A program made the position numbers and the translations under genes. A stretch of DNA of 32,000 nt from Zygophlyctis sp. KS116 (taxonomy: Eukaryota; Fungi; Chytridiomycota), in the NCBI GenBank assembly GCA_054661495.1, contig BAAFSQ010000071.1, forward strand, positions 1-32,000, in the 5' to 3' direction. Shown one piece after another: positions 1-28,706 of the stretch. The notes beneath the pieces are model-generated. The model did not search any database. It was not told the origin of the DNA and was given only the letters and a program-made list of their open reading frames with translations. Position 1 is the stretch's first letter, and each line of letters opens with the position of its first letter.

Positions 1-1402
1 AATCAGATATTAGAATTGAATCATCTTCATTCATACTCCAAACAGGATCTTTTGCAACCTTATAACCCTTTTCAAGACTTTCCATCCTCTCTTCTTTAAC
101 ATTGCTATTTCTGTCTGTTAATAAATCATTGCCAAAATTTGATAAAAGTAAAGTGTCCGCATCGCATTTTTCAATAAAACTATCATCTGCAATAAGACTG
201 TGATTCAGAATATTGATCTCTAAATCTTTCTTATCGGAGTTATCTGCAATAGAAGCTCTACTCTTATTCTCAAACTCCTTAATTAGAAAAGATATGTGCG
301 GTTCATCCAAAATATCTTCCTCTTTCACCTTTATATCTTCCTCTTTTACCTTTTCAGGACTAGATACCGGCAGCTCTTGAAGCAACAAGGAAGAATTACT
401 ATTTTTTTCCATTTGAGACATTGAAACACTTTCAGAATCTACAGCTTCCGAAATTGATGATCCTGAACTACTCTTATTTGCCAGCTGTTCAATTCTTGCT
501 TTGATCATTTCTATATTAACCATTAGAGTTTTGTAAATTCTTTTATTAGTGTCATCTACTTTTGAGAAACCAAAAAAAATACCAGTTATTGTGCTTGATG
601 ATTCTTGATGTGAAATATTTGATACTCTTTCAATTCCAGATTCACTATAATCCTGAACAAAAGACACGTCATATTCCACCTTCTTCACAGTATCTCTTAA
701 CGTGTCTTTATCCTGCTGATCCAACTCTTGATTAATCATTTCAATACTTTCAGAGTCCAGATTTTCCTTTATTTTCAGAGGAGAGAAAACTTTAAATTTA
801 CTTCTTCTATAATCATTCAATGCATTCAATTTCTTTTGTAATTCCAACCTTTGAGCCTCTTTTTGTTCCCTTCCTGCCCTTAAAGACGCCAACCTCTTCT
901 TCTTCCCTTCTTGAATATATTTTTGAATCTCTAGACTCTTTTCCTTTTCCTTTTGAGCCAATAACTTTGTCCGAATAATTTCTTCTTCCAACTGATTCCC
1001 CATTATTGTCGACTCTACTCCTGTTACATTCCTCCCCCTGTTATTAGCAGTTTTACTTTTATTAGACTCCTTTCTTTCTATAACCTTGCTTTTACCAATA
1101 CTTTTCTTCCCAGAGAATGCAATCGGAGCCTTGATAACTGGTTCTGTATGTCTTGAACCGCCTTCTTTTCCGTGTATTTTCCCATGCTCCTCTACATCTT
1201 TAATATCTTGTTTATTAACATGAGCTCCTTTTGCAACTGTTTGTTTTCCTTTACTTGTAGTAGAATTTACTGTTAAAACTTTGGTCTTTCTCGTCAGTTT
1301 CCTTTGATTGCCCATTGACAATTGTTCATTGGACTCAACCTCTTCATAAACTCTGTGAGCAGGGACTATATTAACTATTCTCTCTGTAAAGACAAAATTC
1401 AT
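1..1402 (-). CDS. Large low-complexity/coiled-coil protein, N-terminal part (runs off the window edge); weak resemblance to CEP350-like centrosomal proteins
   Basis: Hand translation gives an open minus-strand frame from ATG 1402 (alternative ATG 1315) to base 1, absent from the ORF track because no stop is reached. Lys/Glu/Ser rich, with segment IQKYIQEGKKKRLASLRAGREQKEAQRLELQKKLNAL. Family assignment is tentative. Confidence 0.6.
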   Translation of the reverse strand, partial: MNFVFTERIVNIVPAHRVYEEVESNEQLSMGNQRKLTRKTKVLTVNSTTSKGKQTVAKGAHVNKQDIKDVEEHGKIHGKEGGSRHTEPVIKAPIAFSGKKSIGKSKVIERKESNKSKTANNRGRNVTGVESTIMGNQLEEEIIRTKLLAQKEKEKSLEIQKYIQEGKKKRLASLRAGREQKEAQRLELQKKLNALNDYRRSKFKVFSPLKIKENLDSESIEMINQELDQQDKDTLRDTVKKVEYDVSFVQDYSESGIERVSNISHQESSSTITGIFFGFSKVDDTNKRIYKTLMVNIEMIKARIEQLANKSSSGSSISEAVDSESVSMSQMEKNSNSSLLLQELPVSSPEKVKEEDIKVKEEDILDEPHISFLIKEFENKSRASIADNSDKKDLEINILNHSLIADDSFIEKCDADTLLLSNFGNDLLTDRNSNVKEERMESLEKGYKVAKDPVWSMNEDDSILISD

Positions 1403-1413
1403 TTTCGGAATTT

Positions 1414-2016
1414 TCACTCCTTGACTGGTTCTTCTTCTTCGTCATCAGAGTCTGGAGCATTTCCTCCCTTCATAGATTCCATCATGGCATTCATATCCAT
1501 TCCTCCCATACCTGGCATACCACCCATTCCTCCAAAACTAGAGAAATCCATACCTTCCATTCCTGGCATTCCCATTCCTGGCATTCCCATTCCTGGCATT
1601 CCCATTCCTGGCATACCCATTCCTGGCATTCCAGCCTCTTCTTCATCTTCCTCATCTTCATCCTTCCATCTAGAGAAATCTAAAGTTACTTTTATTAAAG
1701 GATTACCAGTCTTTAAAAAGTTAAGTTTAGCATTTGTCAATTTTGGCCAATATTCAGCATCCTTTTTACAAAGAACCAAGACAATAGATCTAGCGCTCAC
1801 AGATTTCTTTGAGTCTTCTACCTTTATGTCTTTTAAAAAATCCATTTTGAATGAATATTCCTTTCCATTGGATGTGGCACTAAAGTCCAAAGATTTTTCT
1901 TTTAAATCCATCTTCTCGTTTGAAACATCAACAAGGTTAATGACAAGAGTAATCGTTTCTGATCTCTGGGACCAAAGAACTTGTGGGGAAAGAGTTGGAG
2001 TTTCAGCGGTCATCAT
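1414..2016 (-). CDS. SBA1: Hsp90 co-chaperone p23/Sba1 (CS domain) with Gly-Met-rich acidic tail
   Basis: [15 protein letters not shown], and [14 protein letters not shown] after removing a 27-nt GT-AG intron at 1680-1706; GMPGM repeats and an acidic C-terminus typical of p23. Confidence 0.92.
1558..1632 (-). repeat. Five tandem 15-bp coding units encoding (GMPGM)n in the p23 tail
   Basis: cattcctggcattcc repeated about 5 times with one variant (cattcctggcatacc). Confidence 0.9.
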
Positions 2017-2080
2017 TCTTTTTCTTTTTCTACAAAATACAACCTACACCTCTCGAAACTCAAAAGGCTCTACTACTACT

Positions 2081-4634
<2,554 letters not shown>

Positions 4635-4709: not shown

Positions 4710-6653
4710 CTAACGTTGAGCATATGTCAACGCTTTCTCTTTATCTGCATGCGAAGAGTTTTCTGAAACGCTGATTGAAATGACTGTCGACAAAATGGGT
4801 TGATCTCTACCCTTACAAATAATTAGACAAGAAAGCTCGATATTTTGACAATCACCATCAAGACAATCAATAAGACCGTCAGTGACACAATTTGAGCCTG
4901 GAGGCAAGTACGGTATCTAAAATTTTAAAAATAGAGCAATCACCTTTACTATATTTGGTGTGATAATGACTCTGGAAATAGGCTGTATTTTCAGCATCAA
5001 GTGAGCTGCGGGCCAGATTGATTTGTTGGTTGTCCTGATCAAAAGTGAAAATGGATTATAAACTCCAATCAACTATTATCAGTTATCTAAAACTTCAGTT
5101 ACCTCTACGTTAGCTTCTATCAGGATTGGCATCGAAGAATATGGAAAAACCTTGCTTCGATCGAGACAAACTTGCGATAATATATCCATTTTCTGAAATC
5201 TATCGAATATACCTTTATCATTTCAGGATTGATAGACATACCTTTAGCATCGTTTTTCTCCCTTTTGAGACAGTCGACAAAGGCTTTTGATTTCTTAGAA
5301 AATTCAAAATCGAGCTTTTTGTTTGCTATATCATCTAATGAAAGCGATGAATTTCTTTTCAAAATATTAACATTTACGGCCTTGTTTGTCATTATTGAAA
5401 TTAGCGCCATGTCTTCTCCTTTGAAATTCCCAAATCTAAATGCTGAAATTGTGTCAGCAAGATTCAATACAAAAATGATATCTCTTCCATTAAATATTTT
5501 GATATCCTTATTTTCTAATGCAACCATAAATCCAAAAAACTTTTTCTGTTCTATAGTAAAGTTATCTATTTGCAAAATCGGTGACGAGAAACTGCAGCTA
5601 AAAATCTCTTTTCCAATCAGACTGTAACACTTTAAGCAATTATCCATAAATGATGCAGCTATGTAATCTTTTGACAAAATAAATTGAGTAGGATTTTTTT
5701 CGAATTGAATAATTTCGATGCATGAGTTTCTATGATTTAAAAAAATGTTGAGATTACCTTGATATAACATAAATGCATCCATCTCGACACAATGCATAGA
5801 TTTTAAAATCACCAAAGTATGATCCAACGCATTTTATCTGCAAAACAGATGACGAAAGCTGAAATTTTTCTGAAATTAGGTATTTAGGAGGAGACAATAG
5901 ATAAATCTGACATTCTAATGTTCCTACAACGATAATGCTCGGCGAGAATCCATCACTAGACTCCCTTTTAGATAACTTATCTATGGCAGATATGTGAACT
6001 TGAATTGTCCGTTTTATTTCACTACATCTGACATGATCCTGCATGAGAGAAATAGATGAAATAGATGTGAGTTTTTGCATTTGATGAGAAAATGACATGT
6101 TCCCAGATAGCCTATATTTTTTAACTTGTTCAATTAGTGATTCAAAATCTGATTTTCTTTCTAAATTTTCGAATTCTTTCAACTGAGTCCAGAGGTCAAA
6201 TTCTACATCGGACATTGGCATGGGATCTAAAACTGTCCTTAAAACACAAGAGTTCCTATGGTATAGAAATATTGTATCTTTTGATGCTACAGCGATGGCA
6301 GGAATGTTTGACTGATTGTAAGACTCTGTTAATTGAATGGCTGTTAATAGTCCATACGCCTCATCAGATATAATGTCCGAATATATGAATTTTGATCCAT
6401 TAAACACTTTGAAAGCTAGATAATTATCATGTTCTTCCAGAAAGACCAAGTCTGTGGATTTTGTGCCTAGTGTATCTACTAGTATCATATTGCAGTTTCT
6501 GGTAATGTTTACGGAAACATCCTTGGGAAATGCAACAGGTATCCATGGGCAGTCATTATTTTCCTTTTCAGGACTACTATATCTACGTCTCTGATATGAT
6601 TCTCCTGAAACTGCAACTCTTGTGACTGGTTTCGACGGGGGTTTAGCAATCAT
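4710..6653 (-). CDS. BBS1: BBSome subunit BBS1-like, spliced
   Basis: Collinear with BBS1 motifs: FKVFNG, PAIAVASKDTIFLYH, EFDLWTQLK, SIIVVGTLECQIYLLSP, GSYFGDFKIYALCRDGCIYVISR, SAFRFGNFKGEDMALISI, VNILKR, QPILSTVISISVSE. Joins ORFs 5754-6653, 5120-5827 and 4710-4907. Confidence 0.8.
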
Positions 6654-24798: not shown

Positions 24799-26582
24799 TC
24801 ACTTTCTACCATTGATCCAGTAAGTCGTCATTGTACCTTTTCCCTACAAAATTAATAAATAGTAATTACCTTGATTTGCATCACATCAGGCTCACTGCAG
24901 TTAATGTTTGTATTCTTGATCAAGTTATATGTAGTTTCAGAAATATGGATCATCATGGGTTTTGATGAGGACTCCATACGTGATGCAGTGTTCACTGTAT
25001 CTCCGACAATGCACCAGTGAGGATTTAACTCACCCAGAACTCCTGCAGTAATTGGTCCAGAGTTTAGACCAATACGAATCTGAATAGCATCGCCCATAGC
25101 AGTTTTAAAGGTTTTTATCATTTCGATGATATCAATGGAAAAATTTACTGCACGGAAAGCATGATCGGCTGCTTTTTCAGGACAACCGGTCACAGCTAAA
25201 TACGCATCACCAATTGTTTCGACTTTGTATACTCCCCATTTCCTTGCAATGGCATCGTATTCAATCCACAATTTGTTTAGTGTACTCAACATATCTTTAG
25301 TAGATGTCTTTCCAGAAAGTACAGTAAAGTTTGCAATGTCAGAAAAGAATACAGTAACGTTTTCATATTCTTGAGCCTCGGTAGATTTTCCAGATTTGAT
25401 TTGTTGGATTACTCTAAAAAATTATAAAATAAAATTACTCTTGAGGCATCATTCTCTCCAAAAGTTTTTCGGTATTTCCCATTTCAGTTTCCAAATCTTG
25501 GGCAATACCAGACAATAAATCGACTTTTTGATTCTGAGCTTCATCAACCGAAGCATTTATCAAAATCAGGGTCAAAAAGACCTTTGCAACAATGTCAATG
25601 CCTACATAAAGTGCTTCACCTTGACCAAAAGTAATATAGTTATATCTAACAAGACCATATACAACAGGGACTTCAAAATTATTTAAGGAAAACTTACAAC
25701 AGTTCCATGCAAACATGCAAGCTAGTCTTGAAAGTTTTAATGCTGTTTTATCCAAATTACAAGCAGTCTTTCCTTCAATTGCATCAGTAAACATATCATA
25801 GAGTCCAGTAACGACAATGCAATGCGATCCGCAAGAAATGATCAAGCAAATTTCAGACCATGGTTGCTTGAGGATCGAGGCAAGAAAGCCAGTGATGACA
25901 AGAATGTAATCATGAGTCATGGTTCGCTTTACTATCGAAGTATTTCGTGTTACATTTCCAATGAGAGCTATCAAAGATGGGCAGCAAGTTAACCATTCTA
26001 TAAATCGGCCGACATCCACAGGATATCCATTTGAATCCTTCAATGATGGAGATAGTCTCAGAAAATGTAGTACATATGTACTGGTGGCCACAATATCCAC
26101 CAAAAGCAAAACCATCGCTAATCCTTTCTTCTCAGCAGTTTTTGCCGAGTTGTATCCCAAAATGGCGAATCCTATCCCGATAATAAAGGCCGAAATGGCA
26201 CATAAATAACCATAATCGGAAATTCCTCGATCAAACTTTGTTTGATATGAATATTTTGACAATGCAAATGTAGCCAGACCCACAGTTGCCAAAAACCAGT
26301 AGGCGGTTGCGCCCTTTTGATAGCGTGCAAGAGCATTACTCTTTCTACTGCTCTGTTTAGTAGCTTGATCTACTTTATCTCTCCAATTGAGCTTTTTCTT
26401 TGTATTAGCTGTCTGAACTTCATCTAGAATCAGTAATGATTAAAATTACCATAGTTTTCCTCTCTGTGTTTATTTGCTTTACATCCGCAATCCTCACATT
26501 TAAAAGATCCCTTTACAATAGAAAACTCAGTACAATCACAAGCATTGCAAGCACCTCTCATCACCTCATTCATGTCCTTCAT
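24799..26582 (-). CDS. Rhodopsin-guanylyl cyclase A (type Ib 8-TM enzymerhodopsin, CyclOp/RGC family) with N-terminal Cys-rich module
   Basis: Exons 26582-26450, 26423-25698, 25670-25439, 25413-24870 and 24843-24799. TM3 RFIEWLTCCP; TM6 WNCFPVVY; TM7 IDIVAKVF (retinal Lys); linker ending LLERMMP; cyclase FFSDIANFT, KVETIGDAY, PHWCIVGDTVNTASRMES, IKGKGTMTTYW. Confidence 0.96.
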
Positions 26583-26718
26583 ATTTTTTAATGTAAACAA
26601 ACAACAATGGATTGACGGTAGGCGCCACTATGACGCACGATTACTGAAATAGATACCACATGTCTGGGTCTAGAATTACTCATGTCTTCATAAAAAATTA
26701 TTTTCATGTAATGCATAT

Positions 26719-28490
26719 TTATGAATATTCTCTACCGTAAATCCAGTAAGTGTTCATAGTCCCTTTCCCCTTGATCTCCATGGTATCTTGATCAGACAAA
26801 ATAAATCCACTGTCTTTGATAAGTTCATATGTTGTTTCTGATATATGTATATTCATTGCCTTGGAAGTTGATTCCATCCGTGAAGCTGTATTTACTGTAT
26901 CTCCTACAATGCACCAATGAGGATTCAATTCACCTAAAATACCAGCCGTAATGGGTCCAGAATTTAAGCCAATTCGAATTTGAAGGGATTCTCCCGCGGT
27001 TGTTCTGAATTTTTTCACCATGTGAATAATATCTATTATGATTAAGCAGTCGATTCTTACCAAGAGCAAAATTAGCCGCTCTAGCAGCATGGTCAGTCGA
27101 TCTTAGAGGACACCCCGTAACAGCCAAGTATGCATCTCCAATAGTCTCAACCTTGTATACACCCCATTTTTTTGCAATGGCATCGTATTCAATCCAAAGC
27201 TTATTTAAGTTAATGAGCATTTCTTTATTCTGATTATCAGTCAAGATATAAAAATACCGATAATTTTCCTGCCAGAACTGTATAGTTTGCTATATCAGAG
27301 AAGAATACTGTAACCGATTCGAATTCTTGAGCGGTGGCACTTTCACCAGATATGATTTGACTAATGACACTAAAGTTTATAAAAGAAAATTACTCTTCGG
27401 GCATCATTCGACCTAAAAGCGTCTCAGTTTTATCTAAATCTTGAGACATTTCTTCAGCGATTCCAACCAAAACTTCAACTTTGTTGTTTTGTAGCTCTTC
27501 AACAGACGCATTTATAAGTAACATTGTAACAAAAACTTTAGACACAATATCCGCCATAGCAAACAGAAGCTCTCCAATTGGAAAACTAACAAGCTTAAAT
27601 CTAACTGAAAAGAAAATGACTGGAAAGCTGGTCCAAGATAACACAGTTACTCCTCTAGTCACCAGCAATGATAAACGGTCCAGTTTGCACATTGTTCTAC
27701 CATAAATCGCATGATTAAACATCTTAAATAACCCAGATATAACATAAAAGTATGCACCAACAGCTACTGCTAATGAAATATAAGAATAGGGAGAGCGCAA
27801 AATAGCACCTAGGAACCCAGCTGAAAGTAAGATATAATCAATAGCAACTGTTTTCTTTCCATGAGTTATATCTCTTGTTAAGACTGAAATAAGAGAAATA
27901 TATGTTGGACATGTTGCATTCCATTCAAAGAATCTGGCAAAATCTACAGGATACCCATTAACATCCCTTAGACTAGGAGTTAACCGGAAATATTTTAAGA
28001 GATGACTTAGCATTGCAATCATGTTTACAATGATTAGTATTTCACTCAGTTTCTTTCGATCATCCTTGGAGGAGAGGTATCCCATTGTAGCAAAGAATAT
28101 ACCCATGAAAAACACCGAGGATGCATACAAATAGACACCATCACTTATTCCTCTTCCAATCTTTTCTGGACGATTTTGAAAAGAAGTATATGCCCAAATA
28201 CTTGATGTAATCAGCCATATCATTGCAATCCTCCTTTGTGAAGCCAATAAGGCTGCCGTTCGCTGGTTTTCCATGATCTTTACAGAGTTAACTTTTTCCA
28301 TATATCCCTTCTTATTGCTATTTTTCCTACCCAACAATGGCATTTGACTCTCATCCTTTGACGCAATCAGGTTCTTATGTTTTGCAGATTTACATCCGCA
28401 ATCAGAGCATCGATGAGTACCATCAAATGTAAACTCTACACAGGTGCAAGACATACAAGCACCTCTCATGACTTCCCTCTTATCTTTCAT
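26719..28490 (-). CDS. Rhodopsin-guanylyl cyclase B (type Ib 8-TM enzymerhodopsin) with N-terminal Cys-rich module
   Basis: Exons 28490-27394, 27369-27258, 27229-27061 and 27032-26719. TM3 RFFEWNATCP; TM6 WTSFPVIF; TM7 ADIVSKVF; linker ending LLGRMMP; cyclase FFSDIANYT, KVETIGDAY, PHWCIVGDTVNTASRMES, IKGKGTMNTYW. Start placed by alignment with paralog A (MKDxxEVMRGAC). Confidence 0.96.
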
Positions 28491-28706
28491 TCCGAGCCAA
28501 CCGTAAACAAAGGGGTGGAAATCGGACACGGAAAGAATTGACACTTTTTATATGAGTACTCTCCAACATATGATGATCAGTATTATAAATATTTAATTAT
28601 AAGTGATACAGATGGAGTTAATATGAAATATATATTGCAGATCTTAAATCAGCTGCAACGATCATAAGAACCAAACGCCACCACGCCGCCTTATCTTATC
28701 TTCTAA

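Follow-up and report, generated by a model that had tools for sequence, protein, structure and literature searches.

Two neighbouring genes, each encoding a complete rhodopsin-guanylyl cyclase (RGC), lie in the first 32,000 nucleotides of contig BAAFSQ010000071.1 from the chytrid fungus Zygophlyctis sp. KS116 (assembly GCA_054661495.1); this whole stretch is referred to below as the window. The genes, RGC-A and RGC-B (hereafter A and B), stand in tandem on the minus strand: B comes first (26719..28490; ATG at 28490, TAA stop, approx. 563 amino acids) and is followed by A (24799..26582; ATG at 26582, TGA stop, approx. 559 amino acids in five exons), with 136 nt between the B stop and the A ATG. 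An original prediction, made from the sequence alone, had placed two same-strand genes 136 bp apart, and on a minus-strand reading its coordinates, strand, and spacing proved exact. Judged by their sequences, A and B belong to the RGC(b) (BeGC1/CaRGC) type and would have been duplicated in their own lineage before the sampled species diverged. We consider it probable that they are homodimeric, light-activated RGC(b) cyclases, old duplicates whose photoreceptors have become subfunctionalised for colour, and that they feed one cyclic GMP (cGMP) pathway.

The full-length models of both genes are well supported. In the genomic reading, B comprises exons 28490-27394, 27369-27258, 27229-27061, and 27032-26719, separated by introns at 27393-27370 (24 nt), 27257-27230 (28 nt), and 27060-27033 (28 nt). 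The corrected model of A comprises exons 26582-26450, 26423-25698, 25670-25439, 25413-24870, and 24843-24799, separated by introns at 26449-26424 (26 nt), 25697-25671 (27 nt), 25438-25414 (25 nt), and 24869-24844 (26 nt). Every intron in the two genes is thus 24-28 nt long and bounded by GT..AG, and the large exons are visible in the program-made list of open reading frames (ORFs). Introns this short raised the possibility of a ciliate source, which was rejected: TAA and TGA both serve as stops, the cyclases most resemble those of blastoclad RGCs, and the rhodopsins group within chytrid sequences. An orthologue of A (P0190; 558 amino acids, intron-free and mRNA-like, on a 1.7-kb JGI/Logan contig) shares 81-93% identity with every A exon and is collinear with A across all four junctions; likewise, an intron-free, full-length orthologue (P0002; 554 amino acids) is collinear with B. 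The intron after the MMPxE motif, which the original prediction had described as shared, occupies the same position and phase (phase 2) in both genes and is real, as a freshwater metatranscriptome contig (X13 record 1, 25254-25597) omits exactly 25 letters at 25414. Because the junctions are backed by the intron-free P0190 and P0002 and by this one RNA splice, rhodopsin and cyclase can be regarded as fused in one polypeptide.

One intron of A is easily missed. It is an in-frame stretch of 27 nt (25671..25697, minus strand; GTAAG...AG) in the region encoding helix 6, between the equivalents of bacteriorhodopsin (BR) W182 and P186. A naive ORF reads through it and thereby gains nine extra residues, which surfaced in the alignment of A with B and are absent from 11/11 aligned homologues and from P0190. 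Upon removal of the insert, A aligns gap-free over the W182...P186 motif and is reduced from 568 residues unspliced to the length given above. The genomic ORFs of the A-like relatives P0008, P0010, and P0011 break at this site, which argues that the helix-6 intron is conserved, and a rhodopsin gene elsewhere in the same genome, on contig C38, breaks at the same position. None of the metatranscriptome contigs matching the locus bridges the 27-nt intron. The gene content proposed originally stands, and the proposed model of A, which overlooked the intron, does not; the correction matters to anyone synthesising gene A.

Pfam and other searches on A and B were run exon by exon. The large exons match Bac_rhodopsin (PF01036; 1.2e-19 for B and 1.9e-16 for A), and the cyclase domain exon of A (24870..25412, minus strand) matches Guanylate_cyc (PF00211) at 1.1e-50. 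The cyclase domain of B (26722..27368, minus strand) is divided among three exons, each of which gives a PF00211 match (0.0087, which is under the Pfam cut-off, 3.7e-11, and 1.7e-29). Among solved structures, the best matches to the A cyclase exon are 6sir (Catenaria; 9.8e-84) and 6ao9 (Blastocladiella; 1.7e-81), and 6ao9 and 6sir are also the best matches to the B cyclase exons; the closest solved relatives of both cyclases are thus the homodimeric domains from Catenaria (6sir, 5oyh) and Blastocladiella (6ao9). Catalytic residues are present in both domains, with 12/12 checked positions intact in A and in B, including both metal-binding Asp residues, the Lys/Glu and Cys that select GTP, the phosphate Arg, and, in the NTASR motif, Asn and Arg. 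The two metal Asp residues, the GTP-specifying Glu and Cys, and NTASR had all been named in the original prediction, and all were found in both genes.

The rhodopsin halves are equally complete. With BR numbering assigned via PDB alignments and a 63-row alignment, both rhodopsins contain the equivalents of R82, E85, W86, C90, D115, W182, P186, D212, and K216. The codon for the Schiff-base lysine (K216 equivalent) lies at 27537..27539 in B (invariant K318, preceded by Ser at the BR A215 position) and at 25582..25584 in A (invariant K280 of the exon-2 translation, preceded by Ala), both on the minus strand, and the D212 equivalent is found four residues ahead of it. An AlphaFold model of B exon 1 alone, built with 25 homologues (pLDDT 79, pTM 0.70), predicts an extra helix at residues 76-105, followed by seven further helices, the last of which (helix 7) runs unbroken to residue 362 and constitutes the linker. 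The extra helix, TM0 of B (28176..28265, minus strand; pLDDT 71-91), aligns with a hydrophobic stretch of A. Pfam matches, residue tables, and, for B, the AlphaFold model thus agree with the architecture read originally in each gene: TM0, a seven-helix rhodopsin with its lysine, a linker, and a class III cyclase. The features that define an RGC, namely a rhodopsin with the retinal-binding lysine, a fused cyclase with a helical linker, the GTP-specifying residues, and TM0, are all found.

Both proteins begin with a Cys-rich module, which in B is encoded at 28371..28490 (minus strand) and follows the pattern RGAC-x2-C-x-C ... C-x2-C-x-C ... H. In A, the same module corresponds to exon 1 (26451..26582, minus strand), and this exon is also found after a B-like gene in the related metagenomic contigs L033 and L036. 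The modules of A and B are 58% identical, and the module is kept in Obelidium and Allomyces RGCs. It matches no Pfam family, and the first 60, Cys-rich residues of B are not confidently folded in the model (AlphaFold confidence <50). RGCs ranging from Allomyces to the chytrids share the Cys6-His-like pattern RGxC-x2-C-x-C...C-x2-C-x-C...H. The same pattern, repeated 6 to 9 times in tandem, is present in metagenomic proteins that are unrelated in other respects (P0093, P0112), so that the module can be regarded as an independent domain.

The relationship between A and B was examined by phylogeny. A HMMER scan of 1.84 billion representatives returned 177 relatives only. In a careful maximum-likelihood tree of 51 rhodopsin domains, rooted on Blastocladiomycota and Sanchytrium, the A clade (8 rows) receives support of 99/97 and the B clade (6 rows) of 100/100. 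Both fall within one 21-row clade (100/98) that consists of freshwater-metagenome sequences only and whose sister group (97/96) comprises RGCs from Entophlyctis, Polyrhizophydium, Boothiomyces, and Globomyces. Two other groups are separate from the A/B clade: one with E85/D89/E212, containing Podochytrium and a Chytridium lagenaria protein, which is of NeoR type, and an Obelidium/Siphonaria/Irineochytrium clade without P186, which behaves like RGC(a) and is provisionally read as such. The phylogeny suggested with the original prediction thus places A and B in the RGC(b) branch, in a tree set from which the named reference proteins GpRGC and GhRGC are absent. The arrangement of the genes is old as well. 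L033 carries a B-like RGC and then an A-type first exon on the same strand, and L036 carries a related RGC and then an A-like gene. The B-then-A tandem is therefore conserved in related metagenomic contigs, and the same-strand cluster of two complete paralogous RGCs described originally recurs there.

As had been proposed, the paralogues have diverged more in their rhodopsins than in their cyclases: the rhodopsin halves of A and B are 40% identical and the cyclase halves 72-78%. This disparity bears on the idea that A and B are redundant copies of the same colour, kept for dosage or for different life stages. Such redundancy would agree with the fact that all signalling residues are common to A and B, and different life stages could be served by their upstream regions, which differ save for a short shared heptamer. 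However, the uneven divergence speaks against redundant copies; moreover, differences at classical tuning sites are fixed per clade across several species, and the two paralogues, which are older than the split of those species, have both been kept. Redundancy is therefore judged improbable.

The tuning-site differences hold in all members of the A and B clades. At BR position 89, the A clade has Cys and the B clade Thr; at 141, Ser and Ala, respectively; at 142, Cys and Val or Leu; at 145, His and Phe or Tyr; and at 215, Ala and Ser. A hydroxyl at position 215 blue-shifts BR-type pigments (BR A215T, SRII T204). S141A blue-shifts BR, GR, and NeoR, and the shift of SRII absorption to the blue has been explained by the loss of polar residues near the ring (PMC8815786). 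Furthermore, T137A, which may equal BR T89, red-shifts GhRGC2 by 24 nm (PMC10622942). Positions 89, 141, 142, and 215 would all predict absorption at shorter wavelengths for B than for A, which makes a two-colour pair plausible. The clade-fixed differences thus fit the two-colour part of the original prediction, and it is its heterodimeric alternative that is not supported.

B also differs from its own orthologues. In the B described here and in a near-identical ENA copy, BR positions 87, 93, and 145 are occupied by Asn, Tyr, and Tyr (helices 3 and 5; window 27900-28000, minus strand); the orthologues have Leu/Val, Leu/Phe, and Phe, respectively. Since position 93 of BR contacts the 13-methyl group of retinal, the kinetics of the B photocycle may differ between species. 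A bolder proposal is that B is a blue homodimeric RGC with a maximum at or below approx. 500 nm, that A absorbs in the green-to-yellow range, and that this lake chytrid lineage has a multi-colour eye of four opsins, made up of A, B, and two cyclase-less rhodopsins encoded in the same genome; at present, this would be a speculative extension, and we regard it as rather doubtful. The homodimeric RGCs characterised in the cited literature span approx. 525-571 nm, with 595 nm reached by mutation, and RgRGC2, at 480 nm, depends on NeoR. If the proposal were true, optogenetics would gain a cGMP tool that it lacks at present, a homodimeric RGC sensitive to blue.

How A and B dimerise is the main point on which readings of the locus diverge. 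They might form an obligate or preferred heterodimer in which one rhodopsin triggers the cyclase and the other modulates it, as in RGC(a)/NeoR. The two genes are adjacent, and their adjacency is conserved; the linker and cyclase, 72-78% identical, would make mixed dimers sterically plausible; and it has been reported that the chytrid cyclase domain, and not the catalytic residues, sets homo- versus heterodimer use (PMC10622942). On the other hand, A and B both group with RGC(b), and residues of NeoR type are missing from both: the NeoR counterion triad (Glu 85, Asp 89, Glu 212), which appears as E/D/E in the NeoR-type proteins P0057, P0069, and P0096, is replaced by E/C/D in A and by E/T/D in B. 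The Asn and Arg, which are missing from NeoR-type cyclases (P0057 and P0073, for example), are also retained in both. Known heterodimeric pairs are coded head-to-head on opposite strands and not in tandem, as A and B are here on one strand, and the tandem RgRGC1 and RgRGC2 are inactive when combined with each other (PMC7655827, PMC10622942). An obligate A-B heterodimer is therefore unlikely, and the heterodimer alternative of the original prediction is not borne out, given that the tested members of the RGC(b) branch are homodimeric and that both cyclases are nearest to the Catenaria and Blastocladiella enzymes.

A heterodimer with a NeoR partner, also raised originally, fares no better. In rhodopsin and cyclase domain searches of the 12.7 Mb assembly (1175 contigs), no NeoR with a cyclase was found; the remaining cyclases (C219, C80, C199) have no rhodopsin in their neighbourhood, and no further fusion was seen, so that a NeoR partner was rejected. 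GpRGC1, GpRGC2, and GhRGC2, which are RGC(b) members, are active homodimers (PMC10622942). Three points together favour the use of A and B as homodimers: their placement in RGC(b), cyclases highly identical to those of Catenaria and Blastocladiella, and the lack of a NeoR partner in the assembly.

Besides A and B, profile searches of the genome revealed two cyclase-less rhodopsin genes (C38:13424-13888 and C43:47777-48328), which bring the total to four; both start with the same Cys module as A and B. The C38 rhodopsin (L003, G000:C38:11924-15388; gene approx. 1245-2334, minus strand) ends approx. 25 residues past helix 7. It has E85, D89, and S115 as in NeoR-type sequences, but His at 212, and it nests beside the A clade in the maximum-likelihood tree, a position that makes it resemble an RGC after cyclase loss. 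The C43 rhodopsin (L004, G000:C43:46277-49828; 1501-2823, minus strand) is very divergent, with D85, D212, and K216 equivalents, and stops right after helix 7. A kinase-like ORF (507-1286 of L004, minus strand; Pkinase 1.4e-9) lies 215 nt downstream of it. A rhodopsin-kinase fusion was considered and rejected; the 215-nt gap contains no splice donor and the kinase-like ORF has a separate ATG, which indicates that these are probably two genes. It has also to be asked whether A, B, or both might be modulated by the cyclase-less rhodopsins, acting as a lineage-specific analogue of NeoR. The shared Cys module would be in keeping with this idea, as would, for C38, the helix-6 intron held in common with A, the position beside the A clade, and the NeoR-like residues; moreover, cyclase-less NeoR-like rhodopsins adjoin RGC(b) genes in Rhizophydiales (PMC10622942). 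Nevertheless, C38 and C43 are separate contigs from that of A and B, both proteins are without linker and cyclase, the parts through which RGCs dimerise, and the published cyclase-less forms have no assigned function (PMC10622942). Modulation by these proteins thus seems very remote.

The homodimeric, colour-subfunctionalised reading that we favour implies the following chain of events. A and B would each bind all-trans retinal at the helix-7 lysine and would each dimerise with themselves through the linker helix and the cyclase, and light would lift the dark inhibition of the cyclase, which would then produce cGMP. With its rhodopsin halves subfunctionalised, B would respond to shorter wavelengths and A to longer ones, and the two proteins would give the swimming stage two spectral channels into one cGMP pathway. 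Likely downstream targets would be channel-like proteins with a cyclic nucleotide-binding domain (CNBD) encoded on contigs C12 and C67. We infer retinal binding, homodimerisation, the colour difference, expression in zoospores, and the link to a channel from the sequences.

The assembly contains 25 cNMP-binding matches. Two of the corresponding genes, L020 (G000:C12:56697-59945) and L019 (G000:C67:41942-44519), encode membrane proteins with an S5/S6-like segment, a C-linker, and a CNBD, and L020 matches SthK and cyclic nucleotide-gated (CNG) channels from S6 to the CNBD (2.7e-20). Neither has a recognisable selectivity filter, and Pfam detects the CNBD alone in them, with no Ion_trans match; their identification as channels is tentative. 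A canonical CNG channel was rejected as well, as Ion_trans matches share no contig with cNMP-binding matches. The search for a CNG channel that accompanied the original prediction was thus answered in part, with two CNBD channel-like genes and no canonical CNG channel.

Several points weigh against the favoured reading. RgRGC1 and RgRGC2 keep their catalytic residues yet are obligate heterodimers (PMC8815786, PMC12264004), and intact residues are therefore no proof of homodimer activity. The four-site colour prediction is qualitative, and it may be altered by Asn87, Tyr93, and Tyr145 of B and by His145 of A. The channel-like genes are without a recognisable filter or an Ion_trans match. RNA-library contigs do not prove that B is transcribed, because no B junction is bridged and DNA may be present in the libraries. 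Finally, a search of the fragmented assembly gave no carotenoid oxygenase of the RPE65 type. The gene may fall in an assembly gap; if not, the organism may obtain retinal from its host or prey or make it with a different enzyme. The profile search gave two SQS_PSY matches in the assembly.

Pieces of A and B are present in four freshwater or estuary metatranscriptome runs, and metagenomes of several studies, sampled from freshwater, lakes, and estuaries, contain the DNA. The RNA-library contigs on B cover 27402-27552, 27629-27861, 27704-27893, and 27952-28102; among the metatranscriptome contigs matching the locus, none bridges any B intron or the gap between A and B. Each of the two genes probably has its own promoter. 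A block conserved upstream of A (26593..26629, minus strand), which reads AGTGGCGCC ... CCATTGTT ... TGTTTAC, is kept in front of the A-like gene of L033 and has no second copy in the genome. Its forkhead-like TGTTTAC starts 17 nt before the A ATG, and a TGTTTAC upstream of B (28503..28509, minus strand) starts 19 nt before the B ATG. The C43 gene is preceded by the reverse complement (GTAAACA) at an equal distance, and the C38 gene by TGTTTAT, which starts 13 nt ahead of it; all four rhodopsin genes and the A-like gene of L033 thus have a TGTTTAC-like heptamer 13-20 nt before the ATG. In the 32-kb window, TGTTTAC occurs 6 times versus 4.2 expected; two of the six copies are those upstream of the A and B ATGs, and two fall within A and B coding sequence. 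The heptamers hint at separate but similarly controlled promoters, an observation made post hoc, and A and B may, we infer, be co-regulated. The composite pattern AGTGGCG followed by TTGTTTAC was also tried; it is unique to gene A in the genome and defines no regulon. Elsewhere in the window (5754-6653, minus strand), there is an exon of BBS1, a BBSome subunit, which indicates that the organism builds a flagellum and fits a zoospore stage.

With this locus, a chytrid lineage known from freshwater metagenomes contributes two RGC gene models of full length; the understanding of fungal phototaxis is left unchanged. Tandem duplication of RGCs and divergence of their photoreceptors arose in this lineage independently of the published clusters in Chytridiales and Rhizophydiales. 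The pair can be regarded as a natural experiment in which colour is tuned on a nearly constant cyclase, and B is a candidate blue-shifted, homodimeric cGMP actuator.

BeGC1/CyclOp of Blastocladiella emersonii and CaRGC of Catenaria anguillulae have the same architecture as A and B, from the Cys-rich N-terminus through to the GTP-specific class III cyclase, and share with them the Glu counterion, the Cys/Asp pair, and the lysine. The rhodopsin halves of A and B are approx. 30% identical to the Allomyces homologue. Unlike BeGC1 and CaRGC, the genes described here are two tandem RGC paralogues with introns of 24-28 nt. More distantly, the rhodopsin phosphodiesterase of Salpingoeca rosetta (7cj3, 7d7q), an 8-TM enzyme rhodopsin, is the best solved match to the rhodopsin half (E 6.9e-22); it belongs to a different lineage and has a phosphodiesterase effector instead of a cyclase.

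The novelty implied originally does not hold, as tandem or linear RGC clusters with different colours have already been published (Broser 2020, 2022, 2023). RGC1 and RGC2 of Rhizoclosmatium globosum (Broser 2020, 2022) are a two-colour pair in tandem on one strand, with maxima at 550 and 480 nm, green and blue, respectively (PMC8815786). These proteins are RGC(a) and are inactive without the NeoR coded head-to-head beside them, whereas A and B are placed in the other branch. Several complete RGC(b) genes are likewise linearly clustered in Gorgonomyces haynaldii (GhRGC1-3) and Globomyces pollinis-pini (GpRGC1/2), and the three Gorgonomyces RGCs are homodimeric and have different spectra (PMC10622942). 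In these Rhizophydiales clusters, paralogues with different spectra are accompanied by cyclase-less relatives in the same genomes (PMC10622942). The RGCs of Rhizophydiales and Chytridiales are the nearest named sequences to A and B in the maximum-likelihood tree; however, the A/B duplication took place inside the separate clade of freshwater-metagenome sequences. In A and B, the N-terminus has stayed long and includes the Cys module and TM0, whereas Rhizophydiales RGCs have been reported with short N-termini, and A and B keep the BR P186 proline, the loss of which red-shifts GpRGC2 and GhRGC2 (PMC10622942). Unlike in Rhizophydiales, the cyclase-less rhodopsins of this genome are unlinked to the RGCs and keep W86 and W182. 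What is specific to the pair described here is thus an independent duplication, the long N-terminus with its Cys module, mini-introns that include a hidden in-frame one, and a candidate blue homodimeric RGC.

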